DNA from: Kudoa neothunni
Taxonomy: Eukaryota > Animalia > Cnidaria
Assembly: GCA_964304625.1 (NCBI GenBank)
Contig: OZ199838.1
Span: 1,839,927-1,903,926 of the forward strand
Direction of reading: 5' to 3'
Length of the DNA: 64,000 nt
Position numbers and translations under genes: made by a program. Of the stretch, positions 19,427-64,000 are shown piece after piece. The notes beneath the pieces were generated by a model, which ran no database searches, was not told where the DNA came from, and saw only the letters and a list, made by a program, of their open reading frames with translations. Within the stretch, counting starts at the first letter, position 1. Each line of letters opens with the position of its first letter.

Positions 19427-20623
19427 TTAATGTTTGATGTGGTTGACAGTGGAATTTTGAACTCCATTAGGATAATAGGGCCTTATGTTGTTAGGGTTGA
19501 TTTTGAGTTTGGATAGAATGAGTTTATAAAATTCTTCATAAAAGTTCGACATGCCATCATACCCAGGTAGAAAATTGATATCAATAAGTCCATAATTGTA
19601 GCCATTCACAATAATATCTATGCCCATCAATGTGAAAGGTATAACCTAAATTAGAGTAATCATATCATTAGAAAAAATAAGTAGATAGATAGATGGTACT
19701 TGTTGTAGACGCCGTATCAATTCATTCACAACATCATCATTCAACAGTTCATTATTGCCATAGCTGACATGCTGATGGTATCGTTTGGCGAATTTGTTAA
19801 GAAATGACACCGAATCAGGTTTCGACACTTCATGACTATTGAAAACAATAGAAGGATGTTTACAGCTGTGGTTGGTGCCATTTTCATTGGTGAATCCGTT
19901 GGTGTTGGTTGTTGAGGAGGAGCGTTCATGGCCATCACTAGATGGATCGATATCGATACTATCTTTGAAATTACGAATCGACGGTCGATTGACGATACAC
20001 CATGACGATCCAACAACAAATATTTTGCACATATTCATATCATGATTGATAAAACTTTGCGCAATACAAGGCACAATTTCGAGTTCATTCATCAGTTGAT
20101 ATGAATTGAAGATGAGTTGCATATCATGCGCACCAGGGCCTTCAGCAGCATTCAACGCCTTACACAGAATAGGATAGGTGACCCCCTTGGAGGAGAGTGA
20201 ATGAGTTAATTGTTCACAAGTTTGTTGTTTGATATGGTCGATTTTCACCCATGGAGGTACATAAACTCTATAGCGACCCAATTGAAAAGTGCTTTTCTCA
20301 CATATACAACTCATAGTGGCCCGATTCGCCAACTGAAAAACCATATCAATGCTATCAATAAACACACACGAAGTGGAGTGGATCTTTTGAAAGTTGTACA
20401 TTTCTTGTATGATATTCGACGCAACGACATCTCCTTGATCAGCATCTCGTTGATAATCACTAATTTTATGAATAATCATATTGAAAGGGCCTTGCGCTTC
20501 GAGCGAAAGTCTATCATCTATATTCACCACTTCAACATTGAGCGCGTTGAGTTTCTCTTTCACACAATCTAGTAGGCCGAGCGCTTGAGCTTTTTTCTCA
20601 GCCAGCAAATAACCGACACGCAT
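19427..20623 (-). CDS. ITPK1: Inositol-tetrakisphosphate 1-kinase (ATP-grasp), 2 coding exons
   Basis: MRVGYLLAEKK, QGPFNMIIHKISD, YPILCK, HDMQLIFN, QSFINH...KIFVVG, RPSIRNF, FNSHEVSKPDS. Intron 19646-19699 joins GIDII...LIDINFLPGYDG. Confidence 0.95.
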
Positions 20624-56349: not shown

Positions 56350-59300
56350 ATGATGGTTATACCAATAAAGCTAAGATATCTCTCATCGATATATCTCCTT
56401 GTTTTTGCTTGTAACCATTTTTATGATTATTACTGTTAATCGAAATTAGTATCATGCGAAAAACATGCTCTTATCAACATTGATAATAACAGGATGAAAA
56501 TGCATTTTTCAAATGATAATAGCAAATATATTATTTCGCTTTCTGGATATTATATTGAAAACAGCCATAGACATTGTGCACTCCAGTATTATAACCATGA
56601 GGGAGCTTTAATGGAGAATGTATCTACATGCACTAAAGATATTGATGGTGCCACCTCGGATGCGACTAAAAAGATGTGCATTTACAAATGTAAAAAAGTC
56701 GAATTAAAGATTGAAAGAGAAGAATTAAAAAAAATTAAGATTATTAAGTGGTGTCAAGGGAAAGATGTCGAGGATGTAAAAAAATGCCCTACTAAAAAAG
56801 CATTCGCACTCGAAGGTATAGAAACTAAATCTGAGATTTTTTAACATTATTAATTAGATCTTTATATAAAAAGTTTATTGTCAGTGTCAAAGAATAATAA
56901 TGATTTTATTGCTTTAATTAGAAGTAAAGTAAACGGTGGATTTAAACTTAAGGACAGATCTATTGAAAAATATAACCAGGCAGCAACTACTGACTTTTAT
57001 ACTGAGAAGTCTGTTACACTGCACTCCAGGCCATATAAGGCTAAATATATTGTTGAATTTGAAAATCGTTCGCCGACAATATTATTGAATCCTAAAAAAC
57101 CTGATGAAGATTGGTTTATAGCGACGGGATCCAAAAGTACCAACTATTATACAATCACAATTCAAAATCCACAACCATCTCAATTATGCTACTTTGGAAT
57201 AAAACATATATATGATTCCCACTTTTCGTCTAATTGTTCAGATATGAATAAAGCGGGACCATGTCTTCGGCCATGTTACAAAGCAACATTGTTTCTCGAT
57301 GCTGAATTGGAGTTCGCCCAGGTACTTGTGAAACCCCACGAAATAATAACTTCCAAAGAATTTATACAAACTATCACATGTAAATTATACTTTATTTGTT
57401 GACTTTTATTGATTGTATAGTTGGTACTCTACAACCAAGTGTTACTAATATTAAAAAAGATCAAATCACTGTTGATTTCACTAATTTAAATAAAAATGAA
57501 GGTGGAAATGATGTTGAAAGTGGATCATCTATAGCTGAAGTCAAAATAATAGAGAAATTTCTTGGGGTTTCAAATATTTGGAAGACCTCTACATGCAATG
57601 GAGGATGTACAAACTTCGGGTCAATAACGATGACTTCGCTTATTCCAATGACAGAATACATTTTAAAAGTTAAAATAACTGGTCTTACAACATTTGATTC
57701 TCCAGAAGTAAAATATTACCATCGTTATGTTTATTTCAAAACTACAGGTAGCCGTAAATGCTTAACCATATTCTTATACGTTCAAATAGGGGATGCATTA
57801 TCAAAACGTGATCTTACACCTACTAACACCGCTGACAAAAATAATGAGTTAACATTAAATCCATCGAGTTTATTCGACCGTGGAAGTGAGGCCGCACATT
57901 GTGAACTTTATTATTCAGTGGACGGACAAGATTCTGTTAAATATCCTGCTACATGTAAAGTCGAAAATGAGAACAAATTTTGTTCTGGTTCTTGCGGTAG
58001 TGATTTCAATATAATTAATCTTGATCCAAAAACTAAATACAAAGTAACCGTTTGTCCCGAAAGTTACACATGTGTTTTAAGCAATGCTGCTGAAAGTAAT
58101 TTTTTATGCAATCACAATAATGATGAATATAAATAGCTAATGGAATCGATTATACAATGGATAAATCACAAGATGTTGATAAAAAAAAAACTACCATAAA
58201 ATTTACTCTTACAAGTGGCAGTTTCGGAGATTTATTGGCGTACATTCTCCTGGAAAAAGAATCAAAGAGAGTTGTTGTGGATTGTTTGAATAGTGTGTGT
58301 GATCCTACTGTAACGACTTCACCTGAAACCACTGCCACATTAGAATTTTTATGGGCTAAACTTAACACTGAATTTACTTACAAGCTAGTCGTTATCTACA
58401 AAGGTTATGCATTACCAAAGGAAACAGAAATAGAACGTAATTTTTATTAATGACATTCACTTTATTTCTTTAGGCGGTATTGAAAAAGGTGGTCAGGAAA
58501 TGAAACTATATTATAAAAAATCTGAAGGAAAATACAAAGTACAATTTAGTGGCGATCTCATAGAAAAGGGCGAAAAAGATTGTACTGTTAAAAAATCCAA
58601 TAATGAATTATCCGACTACGAGAATGCTAGTCAGAGCAGTGCTGAAAACAAAAAAAAATGCAACTTACTTTCAACAGAATTTGATATTGATATCACTAGC
58701 CAAAATAAACCTAACTACATTTCTGTCACTTATCCAGATTCTAAGGAGGTTCAAGTCCTGAATTCCCAGAAATCTGGTATTAATGGACCAATTTTTGCAC
58801 GATCGAGTTCTCCAGGTCCAACGTCAAATGGACAAGGAGGAGTTCAAGGTAAATCTGGGGGTGAAGACGGAGGAGAAAACGGTGAAAAAGATGAAAGTAA
58901 AGGAGATGTAAATAATGAGGGTAGAAAAGATGGTAAAACAGCACCAACCCCAGCCCCACAACCAAGAACTGAAACAAAACATTATAAATCCGGAAAAGTT
59001 TATTCATACTACATAGGTATTATCCAAATTATTGATAATTATAACATTTTTAAGATGATTATGAAGAAATATCATACTTAGCCAAATTAGAAGAAGATAA
59101 AATTAAACTGGGTTCACATAAGTGTGACTTATCGTGCAAAGCACATAAAGATGACCAACATCAGGGAACTATTTCTGAAACAAAAGATAATGCCGCATCA
59201 TGTGGATTTGGTAGTTATTCTATTCAATTCGATGAGCTTGTTAATGACTATTATATAAGCTGCCCCAAACATCTGGACTTTCATTATTTTTACGACAATA

Positions 59301-62300
59301 CGTTTATTAAAACATATGCACCAGTGTTTAGCAGATTTTATTACGAATTAGCTGATGTAAATGAATCCACGTTCACTGTTAAACTTGTCAATCCAGAGCC
59401 ATCTGAAATGTGTACATTTGAATGGATAGACGCCACAGCATCATCTTCTAATAACGTTTTTTCAAACCATTGCTCAAATAAGGAACACTGTTATTTCAGC
59501 ATATGTAATAGTTTTAAATTTGGAAATATTTCACCAAGTGTAAAAGCAATAAAAATACGAGTCCTAAAGTTAGGAATGCAACCCACTGTTGGTTACCAAA
59601 ATAATATATACATATGTAAGTTTGAAATATTTTTAATATATATATATAATGTGATTTTTAGTAAAACATGGTAATGATGCTTCTGTGAAAACAGAAGGAG
59701 AAAACATTAAAATAAACATTTCTAAAAATAATAAAAATGAAGCTGGTGACGCAGTTAGTGATCCACCTGTTACATGTTCTCTATCATCTTGGAACACATA
59801 TGCTCCATTGGTTTCTGAAAACGGAAGAAAAACAATAAATGGTTCACCAAATTGTGTTTTCGGGGATATACAAATTACTCCTGCTCCAACTCATTTGCCT
59901 AATGATATTATGGTAACAATGATAAATATTCCTGATTATTTACCACGAAAATATTTTTACCATAAAACAAGTATTGTAAGATTTTAAAATACATTATAAT
60001 ACTTTTATTAGGTCAAACCAATGACCTTCCCATTCAAGACACATCTATCACCGCTACTGATGTTGGATTCACAATCACTGCAACTACAAATGCCCCATCA
60101 TCAAACATGTGCACTATCTACATAAAAGAGAAAGATAAATTATATTATCCAGCTGTTTGTTCAAGAGATGAATTGTGTGTAAAATCATGCAACTCCGAAT
60201 TCACTGTCATTGGACTTAACTCGGGCACCACCTATGACATTAAAATTGTACCTAGTGGAAGCTATAGAATTGAAACCATAACCGACAAGAAAACAAGTCT
60301 AATTTTTTTATATATTGTATGAATAAGTGAAAAATAGATGGAAAAATGATTGAATTCGAAATTTCAAATGATTCTACTAGGAAACATCTTATTATTAAGC
60401 CTAAGTCTTTTAATGATGCCAGAACCGCAGACTGCTATTACCAGCTTTATAAGCATGAAACAGACGAAGGTAATAATAAAATATTGTTTTTATAAAATTC
60501 ATTTAGCTTCAACTACAAAAATTGTAAAATCATGTATCGGTTGTAGTACTAACGTTCCAAAATGCGACAATATTCGATTCGATAATATATATGATAATAA
60601 GTATAAGTACAGGTTAATGGTTTATGCACACCAAAAGTCAGCACCCTTTAAAATATCGATACCAAGTAGTTTATTAAAATATCTCGTTTGTCAAATTTTT
60701 ATAGGTTTTCCTCAAAGTGGAAAACTTAGTCAAAAATTTATACCATATAAGAATAATGAAGCTGAAAAGTTTTCAATTACACTTTCCGATTTCCCTCAGA
60801 ATAATAAGTGTGTAATAAAAATCTCAAGTTTTGATGAATCTCTAAAATTCAACAAACCACCATTTTGTACGGATATAGCTGGAGATGATTGCTTAGTGGA
60901 ATGCACCAAAAATGACCTTAAAGTCGCATATATTAATTCAAAAGTTGATCGATATATATTGGTTTGTTTTGGAAAGGAAGACGCAATTGCCAAACGTTGC
61001 GAGTACGTTCATATTTTCCCCATAATCATGAGTAATTAAATTATAATTATATTTATAACATTGAATAATAAAAATTAAAGAATTAAAATTTTGTATAATA
61101 TTTTTATAGATTTCAAACAAGATAACACATATGCAATATCTCACAATGATGGAAAAATTGTTGTCTCTTACAAATCAAACTCAATAACTGATTGGAATAT
61201 ACAATATGACGGAAAGGATGATGCTTATAGTGTCACAGAAAAGACCAACTTGAACGTGAAAGCTTATATTGATAATATAGAACAAAAATCCGCCTCTCTA
61301 TCAATTGATAGATACTTGAGTTATTATAAAATCGATTCAACACTTTTGTGGCCAGGAATATTCTATTACTTAAATAATACTTATTTGAATGTTAACATTC
61401 CCCTAAAATCTCAGATTATTTATTCTGTTTCAGGCATAGATACTGACAATAAGAAACTTAAAATTAAATTTTTTCCTGGGCCATATAACTTTGAGGTTTG
61501 TCATATCAAGGTATTTGGAGTAAATGATAAAGACCCAGATGACGAAAATACTGTCCTGAATGGATGTACCGATGAAAAAAAAGAGTGTTTTCAACTTTGT
61601 CAAGATGGTATTATTAATTTGACGACAGGCAATGAGAAGGTTGGAGTAACTGTAAAAAGAAGATTCGATACTGCTGGATTCAAGCAATACTTTAAAAGTA
61701 ATATTAGGTTAGTTTATAAAATAACATGAATTTTTAGGAGGTGATTCGGGTATTAGTTTAGGCGACATAACATCCACAGGTGTCATCCTTAGGGGGCTCA
61801 ACGTCTATAAAGATATGAAAAATGGGAGTGGTGATTCAATCTGTACCATTAAAGTATATCGAGCGAATACTCCTTCCACTGAAACAATTGCTAAATGCAG
61901 TAGCAGTAGCAGCGGCAGTAATGATTGTAACACTAGCTGCGATGCGACCTACTCTATCACAGATTTGACAGCTGGTACAAATTATGTAATTTCCGTATCG
62001 GTAACCAATATCGGATTTAATGAATATAAAAAGAAAGTGTCATTTCGAACATGTAAAAATCATTCTAATCATTGCATCATTCAAATTATATTTAGCTGAT
62101 GGTGAAGCATTAACCGAAATTATTTCATCTCCAACCATAAAGGCTGGCAATGCTACATTAACAGCATTTGCAACTCATAATTCTTTGCCAATCTGTAGAA
62201 TTTACCTTAAAAAGCATGGTTCTGATGAGCCTAAATATATGGCCACATGTGATGGACTGGGAGCTTGCGAGAATAAATGCGAGAGTGAATTCAAAATTAT

Positions 62301-63275
62301 CAACCTCGAATTAGGATCAACTTACAATGTAATTGTTGAACCATCTGAGGGGAAAAAAGAGAGGAAGTATAATGTTACAACAAGTATTTGAAATCCAAAA
62401 TGCTATGGTTGAGAACATTTTTTAGAGAATCTTGCTATTACTATTACGCATAAGTTGGGTGGAGGAAGTGATTTGGTAATTGAAGTAACATTCGAAGGTA
62501 AAGATGAAAATTCAAGGTGTCCGTTCTTCTTGCAGGAAAAAACAGACAACAATCAATCACGACCAACTGTTACATGGTGTAATGATGATGAAGATTGCTT
62601 GGCTAATAACTGTATTATCAACGTCAATGCATTGTCAAAGGATAAGGATTACATAATGAAACTAAAAGTGAAGGATCATTCACTATATAATGAACATACT
62701 ATTCCGTGTAAATAATTTATTTAAATATTGTAATCTTTATCATCTAATAATATAATTTATGAAGATTCGAGGATGATTCAGGCTACAGGGTAATAAAATT
62801 CTAATTATATAATATAATTGTAATTGTTTTTTAGTAAATTTCATCCAAGCCATATTAGATTAAAATATTTATAGAAGAAAATGTGAGGAGCGAGTATGCC
62901 AACATCGAGATAGAAGATATCGTTCAACAAGTAGTTAAAATAGTTGAGACAGGGTAAAAAATGTTTTTGTAATATTATCCATAATATATCATTTAGTAAA
63001 TTATAATAAAATCAATTTTACAATATAAATCCTCTAGATAGTAAGAATAAACAAAACTTTGAAGCCGAAAAGAATAGTCAATCGTAATTTTTATATAAAA
63101 TTCATAATTTAACATTAGATAGGTTTGTCAGAATTTACATGTAAAAACATAACTTTGAAGCTATATAAACTTTTTTAGATTATACGCAATGGTATCCGTC
63201 GTAGCTTCACTACTGTTGATTTTATTCGTAGTTATTTATAAGAAGAAATCTAAGGACTATTCTTATGAGCTATAA
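56350..63275 (+). CDS. Giant (~1,900-2,000 aa) type I membrane protein of tandem Cys-containing FN3-like modules
   Basis: Signal peptide MMVIPIKLRYLSSIYLLVFA; over 20 exons, mostly phase-1 module exons; repeated C-x-(I/L)-Y...C...C-x3-C...L-x-x-x-T-x-Y-x-V pattern; TM LYAMVSVVASLLLILFVVIY and tail KKKSKDYSYEL. Confidence 0.85.
62789..62874 (+). other. Candidate [D1,2] stwintron 1 (internal intron 62790-62834 splitting the donor G|TAAATT of an external intron ending at 62874)
   Basis: acag|G|gtaata...ttttag|TAAATT...atag|aa. Single canonical splices from the 62790 donor all run into stops; two-step removal restores the frame. Confidence 0.7.
62953..63037 (+). other. Candidate [D1,2] stwintron 2 (internal intron 62954-62996; external G62953 + 62997-63037)
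   Basis: acag|G|gtaaaa...atttag|TAAATT...ctctag|at; same context as the preceding junction. Confidence 0.6.
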
Positions 63276-64000
63276 AGAGAAGGATCCATTCAACGTATAT
63301 CACCTCAATTATTTAATATATTATTAAATAATAAAACAATTATTTATTATTTTTTACGAGTTGAAGTATGTAATTCTACATGATATTTTTCTCGTGACGT
63401 AATTAGTCCAGCTTCAGCGTAATTTTTTTCTTATGGTATAACATTTCTATTTTATTAATCTAAAATATTTGAATTGAATTGAATAATAGAATAAATTGAT
63501 GATTGATTCTTTGATAAAATGGACAATGTGTTGTACAAACTAATATTTGCGCTTTAATATAAAGGAAAGTCCATTTATTAATTTATATTTGTCAATATGT
63601 TTATTAAAGTATACAAAATAAATGCAGAATTCCACGTTTTAATATAATCGAAGGTATTTAAATATCTTAGAAGGAACCCTATTAATTTTAAGGTAAAGTA
63701 TAGATCACATTAGTATACATTGCGAATGAAATATAAACGTTATGGAGAAACCACGTAAATATATTTTGTGAACAATATAACATTTCTAACGGTATTTGAT
63801 GAATATCAAGATCCCGTAGACCATCTTCAACAATAACGATGCTTTTATGACGTTTTCCATGATATCATAATCCGGAAATATATTATTAAATTATTTGTTG
63901 TATGTTCTAATATATAGGGATTTTATAGACGACGATTAGGTACTGAATAGATCATCAATTTTGAATTTATCTATATCAATAAAGATATTGATCAACAAAT

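Follow-up and report, generated by a model that had tools for sequence, protein, structure and literature searches.

Two consecutive junctions of probable [D1,2] stwintrons in a surface-protein gene family of the myxozoan Kudoa neothunni

Stwintrons are known from filamentous fungi, the [D1,2] cases coming from Pezizomycotina (PMC12403724, PMC5639578, PMC9024468), as a sequence-only reading of the locus studied here had stated. In the fungal examples, pairing of the nearest splice sites removes the inner intron first and the rebuilt intron afterwards; the intermediate is detectable and one-step missplicing occurs occasionally (PMC12403724, PMC5639578). The literature we searched, from which most subscription journals were absent, contained no stwintron from outside fungi, with all experimental papers concerning ascomycetes, and this agrees with the remark in the sequence-only reading that its author was aware of no report from such a lineage. 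No such structure is described in the passages searched of the 2025 Kudoa genome paper (PMC12239612) or the 2026 myxozoan intron paper (PMC13644364). According to the former, the Kudoa neothunni assembly was built from low-coverage HiFi reads, with almost no parasite RNA, and comprises 40.2 Mb in three chromosomes (N50 12.0 Mb, GC 30.4%) with a median intron of 49 nt (PMC12239612); the latter describes myxozoan branch signals as very weak (PMC13644364).

The stretch analysed here (the window) comprises 64,000 nt of this assembly, and its source, suspected from the letters alone to be an animal, is indeed a myxozoan; a fragment of its 18S rRNA likewise has a myxozoan look. Near the end of the window lies a gene with two successive junctions (referred to as junction 1 and junction 2) that both read exon, G, a complete GT..AG unit, T..AG, exon. 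The relevant features are as follows.

About 56350 to 63275, plus strand: host gene, a type I membrane protein of about 1,960 amino acids (gene model with about 22 intron positions, nearly all in phase 1; the 5' part and an acceptor near 59054/59081 are uncertain)
62426 to 62707, plus strand: last FN3-like exon (profile and structure-model comparison)
62708 to 62764, plus strand: ordinary phase-1 intron, 57 nt, with a weak AAG acceptor (AAG in 22/26 paralogs)
62765 to 62788, plus strand: exon, 24 nt (length constant across 26 paralogs and the distant homolog L053)
62789, plus strand: lone G that begins external intron 1 (unchanged in 26/26 paralogs and in L053)
62790 to 62834, plus strand: internal intron 1, 45 nt, GTAATA..TTTAG (39-50 nt among paralogs)
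62835 to 62874, plus strand: remainder of external intron 1, ending in TAG (41 nt including the lone G; rebuilt donor GTAAAT)
62875 to 62952, plus strand: exon between the two putative stwintrons, 78 nt, stalk helix (third-position-biased variation)
62953, plus strand: lone G that begins external intron 2 (paralog comparison)
62954 to 62996, plus strand: internal intron 2, 43 nt, GTAAAA..TTTAG (38-47 nt among paralogs)
62997 to 63037, plus strand: remainder of external intron 2 (42 nt including the lone G; rebuilt donor GTAAAT)
63038 to 63083, plus strand: exon, 46 nt (paralog comparison)
63084 to 63122, plus strand: ordinary phase-2 intron, 39 nt (paralog comparison)
63123 to 63140, plus strand: microexon, 18 nt (26/26 paralogs; 21 nt in L053)
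63141 to 63178, plus strand: ordinary phase-2 intron, 38 nt (paralog comparison)
63179 to 63275, plus strand: transmembrane (TM) and tail exon to the stop codon (sequence reading)

The host protein consists, in order, of a signal peptide, Cys-containing FN3/Ig-like beta-sandwich repeats, a stalk, one TM helix and a short tail. The match to the Pfam fn3 profile is weak (E 0.009), and the last repeat is predicted to form a seven-strand sandwich with FN3/Ig-like structural matches, none of them below E 0.001. Database searches were run exon by exon, exons being joined for frame checks only. Most paralogs share a conserved S-E-Y/H motif in the stalk exon (62875-62952) and a Y-D/E-L motif at the very end of the tail (63258-63275). 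The intron at 62708-62764 is longer than usual (50-76 nt among paralogs), and its conserved weak acceptor could slow splicing beside junction 1. The region 63084-63178, considered as harbouring a zero-length or a 4-nt exon, proved to contain a real 18-nt microexon between two short introns.

Our re-reading confirmed the coordinates of the two junctions and the lengths of their introns (45/41 and 43/42 nt) as originally proposed. Excision in two steps, the internal intron first and the rebuilt external intron afterwards, keeps the frame open through the TM exon as far as the stop codon at 63273-63275, which had also been claimed. In the window gene one-step splicing between the visible donor and the external acceptor, or a halt half-way, leads to a stop before the anchor; removal of internal intron 1 alone does so after about 12 codons. 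Skipping of the 24-nt exon was rejected as an option, giving an immediate stop. The nested signature occurs twice in the 64-kb window as against a mean of 0.09 in 100 block-wise dinucleotide shuffles, none of which contained two. The sequence-only reading went too far in stating that no one-step splice rescues the frame at junction 1, as the AGs at 62887 and 62890 are in frame (products of 98 and 101 nt, using GAG acceptors within the coding exon), and in naming 63041 as the sole rescue at junction 2, where the AG at 63077 is in frame too; splicing to 62887, 62890 or 63077 would, however, cut into conserved coding sequence.

The locus could also be checked against a public DNA run (X1), as had been suggested for the two GGG runs. 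A 3,106-nt contig from this run spans 61837-63400 without a gap and with six substitutions, none of them in the GGG runs, both of which are thereby confirmed; one of the substitutions, G>A at 63041, removes the nearest one-step rescue AG at junction 2. Since it differs from the assembly at six sites, X1 probably represents another isolate or allele and may be an independent sample. Three RNA runs (X5-X7), which may or may not contain the organism, contributed no reads to 57500-63400.

The middle 78-nt exon matches 63 places in the genome, corresponding to a surface-protein gene family with about 60 members, of which we read 26 paralogs. The arrangement G[GT..AG]T is present at all 52 of their junctions, a count that is partly circular as the loci were chosen by a sequence pattern; nevertheless, 15 of the 52 junctions, with varied donors, were missed by that pattern and conform anyway. 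Roughly 14 further family places outside the set of 26 show a pattern match at about the expected offset. The internal units measure 38-50 nt and the external ones 33-56 nt, with a GC content of 0.14-0.19; in both size and GC they resemble the flanking ordinary introns. Among 13 non-redundant paralogs the median identity of the AT-rich intronic parts is 68%, but none departs from the lone G, the GT, the TAG or the T after it. In the ordinary introns of the gene, position -1 is G in 2/18 cases and the AG is followed by T in 3/18. The rebuilt donors resemble the ordinary ones (A at +3, 0.96 vs 0.98; T at +6, 0.73 vs 0.65; figures partly biased by the selection pattern), and they agree with the Kudoa donor logo in the myxozoan intron paper (PMC13644364). 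The base preceding the lone G is itself G at 51/52 junctions, which may strengthen the rebuilt donor or reflect an encoded residue. Counting against the stwintron reading, T is scarcer in the external acceptors than in those of ordinary introns (0.38 vs 0.50).

After two-step excision, 24/26 paralogs have a reading frame that can be aligned and stays open through the TM helix. L043, L045 and L047 have lost the usual acceptor; in each, the following AG is 3 or 9 nt further on and preserves the two-step frame. The exceptions are L048 and L052, in which one extra base (G or A) before junction 2 breaks the frame; that of L052 is possibly a homopolymer error in the low-coverage assembly. L048 as well as L036 carry frameshifts upstream, being either pseudogenes or assembly errors. 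A candidate third stwintron in L048 turned out to be an ordinary long phase-1 intron. We also considered whether one junction had been copied from the other, or one half from the other half, and rejected this as there is no sequence similarity: alignments of junction 1 with junction 2 gave z of -0.9 to 1.4 and self-complementarity z of -0.1 to 3.3 (plain shuffles), with no convincing internal symmetry. At junction 1 of L011, L018, L025, L030, L034, L035 and L050 and at junction 2 of L038, the external intron contains no stop and its length is divisible by three; judging from sequence, the intermediate in these paralogs would encode a TM protein with an insert of 12-14 amino acids.

A search of 1.84 billion proteins with a profile of the last FN3-like exon returned one credible relative (P0009, E 6e-6), other matches being partial. 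Its contig, L053, encodes a protein with 26-31% identity to the family and conserved cysteines, and it shares the 24-nt exon with the family; its middle exon measures 81 nt, both of its junctions are nested in the same manner (39+36 and 37+37 nt), and the frame is open to the TM exon; the internal acceptor at its junction 1 is CAG, not TAG. L053 was recovered by protein profile alone, with no DNA pattern involved. The run that contains L053 also contains an ortholog of ITPK1 (52% identity), and the two are assumed to come from one organism, a species different from Kudoa neothunni. The ITPK1-like gene of the window (19497-20623, minus strand) has one intron, which is missing in both of its relatives, L054 and L055; the intronless ortholog as a sign of an RNA run was dismissed, as a clearly genomic contig is also devoid of that intron. 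A search with exon profiles for spliced, transcript-derived relatives found none and returned only L053, a contig of genomic type.

Several other explanations of the two junctions have to be weighed. The full 86 or 85 nt could be removed in one step from a non-canonical GG donor located one base upstream of the GT, which would produce an identical mature mRNA and frame with no intermediate, and introns of 80-100 nt are spliced in the family; yet the invariant internal YAG and TAA(A/T)T, found at intron-length spacing in all paralogs and L053, would then be left unexplained, which makes this scenario very unlikely. A conventional single GT-AG splice joining the visible donor to a distal AG in the next exon (62887/62890 at junction 1, 63041/63077 at junction 2) would employ fully canonical dinucleotides, and in-frame AGs suitable for it exist at junction 1 in 26/26 paralogs and at junction 2 in 23/26. 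However, the bases that would have to be removed show codon-like variation (entropy at the three codon positions 0.70/0.42/1.02, matching the remainder of the exon), and 77% of them are purines and 12% T; the rescue at junction 1 is a YAG in just 7/26 paralogs; and the +4 AG at junction 2, present in 16/26, is missing in the three paralogs without any rescue and lost in X1. As the internal site and the in-frame YAG would both remain without explanation, we accord this route very little probability.

It is likewise improbable, to a high degree, that splicing is confined to the internal introns and mainly produces a secreted protein that ends in the retained segment, with the TM exon rarely or never reached. 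Such a scenario would accord with the stop met about 12 codons after internal intron 1 is removed in the window gene and with the frequent intron retention in Myxozoa reported in the genome paper (PMC12239612), but the retained segments are intron-like (GC 0.18) and without a conserved peptide, segment 1 is stop-free in 7/26 paralogs, and coding conservation extends over the downstream exons and the TM helix in all paralogs and L053. Forms spliced in this way and fully spliced forms can coexist as isoforms. Finally, one surplus G in each GGG run might be imagined as an artefact of the low-coverage HiFi assembly (PMC12239612), and two paralogs do have a further G. X1, which shows no indel here, refutes this provided that it does not represent the assembly's own reads, from which its six differences set it apart; moreover, the lone G of L033 and L053 follows an A, outside any GGG run, and 54 junctions from two species have the same layout, so that an artefact is scarcely credible.

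We thus come back to the reading that both junctions are [D1,2] stwintrons in an animal, which on the sequence evidence is probable. A complete internal GT-AG intron separates G1 from T2 of the external donor at 52/52 junctions and at both of L053, excision of the internal intron in the 26 paralogs would rebuild a canonical donor and leave an external intron of normal size, and the frame is restored by two steps, not by one step to the same acceptor, in 24/26 of them and in L053. The paralogs, the distant homolog and the separate DNA run strongly support the original proposal of stwintrons, the order of the two steps being predicted from DNA. By the mechanism envisaged, the major spliceosome would pair the nearest sites and remove the internal GT-AG intron, the lone G would thereby be joined to TAA(A/T)T to form a Kudoa-type donor (GTA..T) behind an exon ending in AG, and a second ordinary splice would take out the external intron of 33-56 nt; both junctions would have to pass through the two steps to hold the frame into the membrane anchor. 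One-step or halted splicing would end translation ahead of the anchor in the window gene and could thus yield a by-product that is secreted or degraded, and its regulatory use is a matter of speculation. A universal stop switch is unsupported, as the retained external unit of junction 1 is stop-free in 7/26 paralogs. A broader idea, that obligatory donor-splitting twin introns have been kept across species of about 30% identity and that the ordered second step switches a large variable surface-protein family between membrane-anchored and secreted forms, is tentative and rather unlikely to hold in full.

The proposal that the genome at large uses two-step splicing stands for one gene family and gains nothing elsewhere. 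Across the genome the strict pattern had 12 matches with G before the GT (at least four of them family members), 21 with T and 17 with a non-T after the AG, and the loose pattern 508 vs 1330; these crude patterns thus reveal no excess of the nested signature outside the family, contrary to what the scan had been expected to find, and the feature accordingly looks family-specific, although isolated instances elsewhere are conceivable. AT-rich [D1,2]-like pattern matches apart from known family places occur at C1:6943942, C2:6053211, C3:1354968 and C3:2222979. Nor can the supposed restriction of the spliceosome to very short introns be upheld. The host gene has an ordinary 78-nt intron (61032-61109), whose counterparts in paralogs measure between about 46 and about 100 nt and have no conserved internal site, so that the argument from a size limit fails. 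Loss of the EJC as an explanation is ruled out as far as Mago nashi is concerned, this gene being present in the Kudoa neothunni genome. There are two Mago nashi copies, separated by about 39 kb and scoring identically (C2:11544138-11584194). A copy of the 18S rRNA gene (L001, from about 1965 onward) is interrupted by an AT-rich insert of coding-like appearance, which may be a retroelement.

If our interpretation is correct, obligatory re-splicing from a rebuilt donor can become fixed in a metazoan retaining an EJC core gene, and about 60 natural variants are available for testing intron definition. As gene predictors cannot model these junctions, the membrane anchor of the family is probably mis-annotated.

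Among the described systems, the Kudoa junctions most resemble fungal [D1,2] stwintrons, in which a U2-type internal intron likewise lies between G1 and T2 of the external donor and both units are of ordinary size (PMC12403724, PMC5639578, PMC9024468); in both, missplicing in one step leaves a surplus G behind and so shifts the frame. Unlike them, the Kudoa case concerns an animal and is predicted from DNA, and its two junctions are consecutive, flanking a single exon of 78-81 nt. The pair has been inherited by gene duplication in about 60 paralogs, and retained in the homolog of about 30% identity, instead of spreading as similar sisters to new positions; in contrast to the sister stwintrons of Hypoxylaceae, the pattern counts give no excess outside the family, and junctions 1 and 2 are unrelated to each other. 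With the alternatively spliced [D1,2]/[A2,3] stwintrons (PMC5587772) the family shares the property that the two routes would yield one and the same mRNA whenever G opens the downstream exon, as it does in 7/26 paralogs at junction 1 and in 3/26 at junction 2. In the window gene (A at 62875 and at 63038) and most paralogs, unlike in those stwintrons, the next exon starts with A, and only the [D1,2] route therefore holds the frame there. Recursive splicing at AG|GT in Drosophila and human (PMC10156609; cited in PMC6616335) is similar in removing consecutive pieces, the first splice creating the donor of the second, but there a whole GT follows the AG, giving a zero-length exon, and one-step splicing produces the same mRNA. 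The internal AG in Kudoa is followed by T and then A, not by GT, and hence forms no zero-nucleotide recursive site; its external GT is split by the first intron, its units are of about 40 nt, and one-step splicing from the visible donor shifts the frame. EJC-repressed re-splicing at regenerated exon-junction sites (PMC8184009) also uses again a site formed at a fresh junction; that event is aberrant and suppressed, whereas the second step in Kudoa would be required and conserved.
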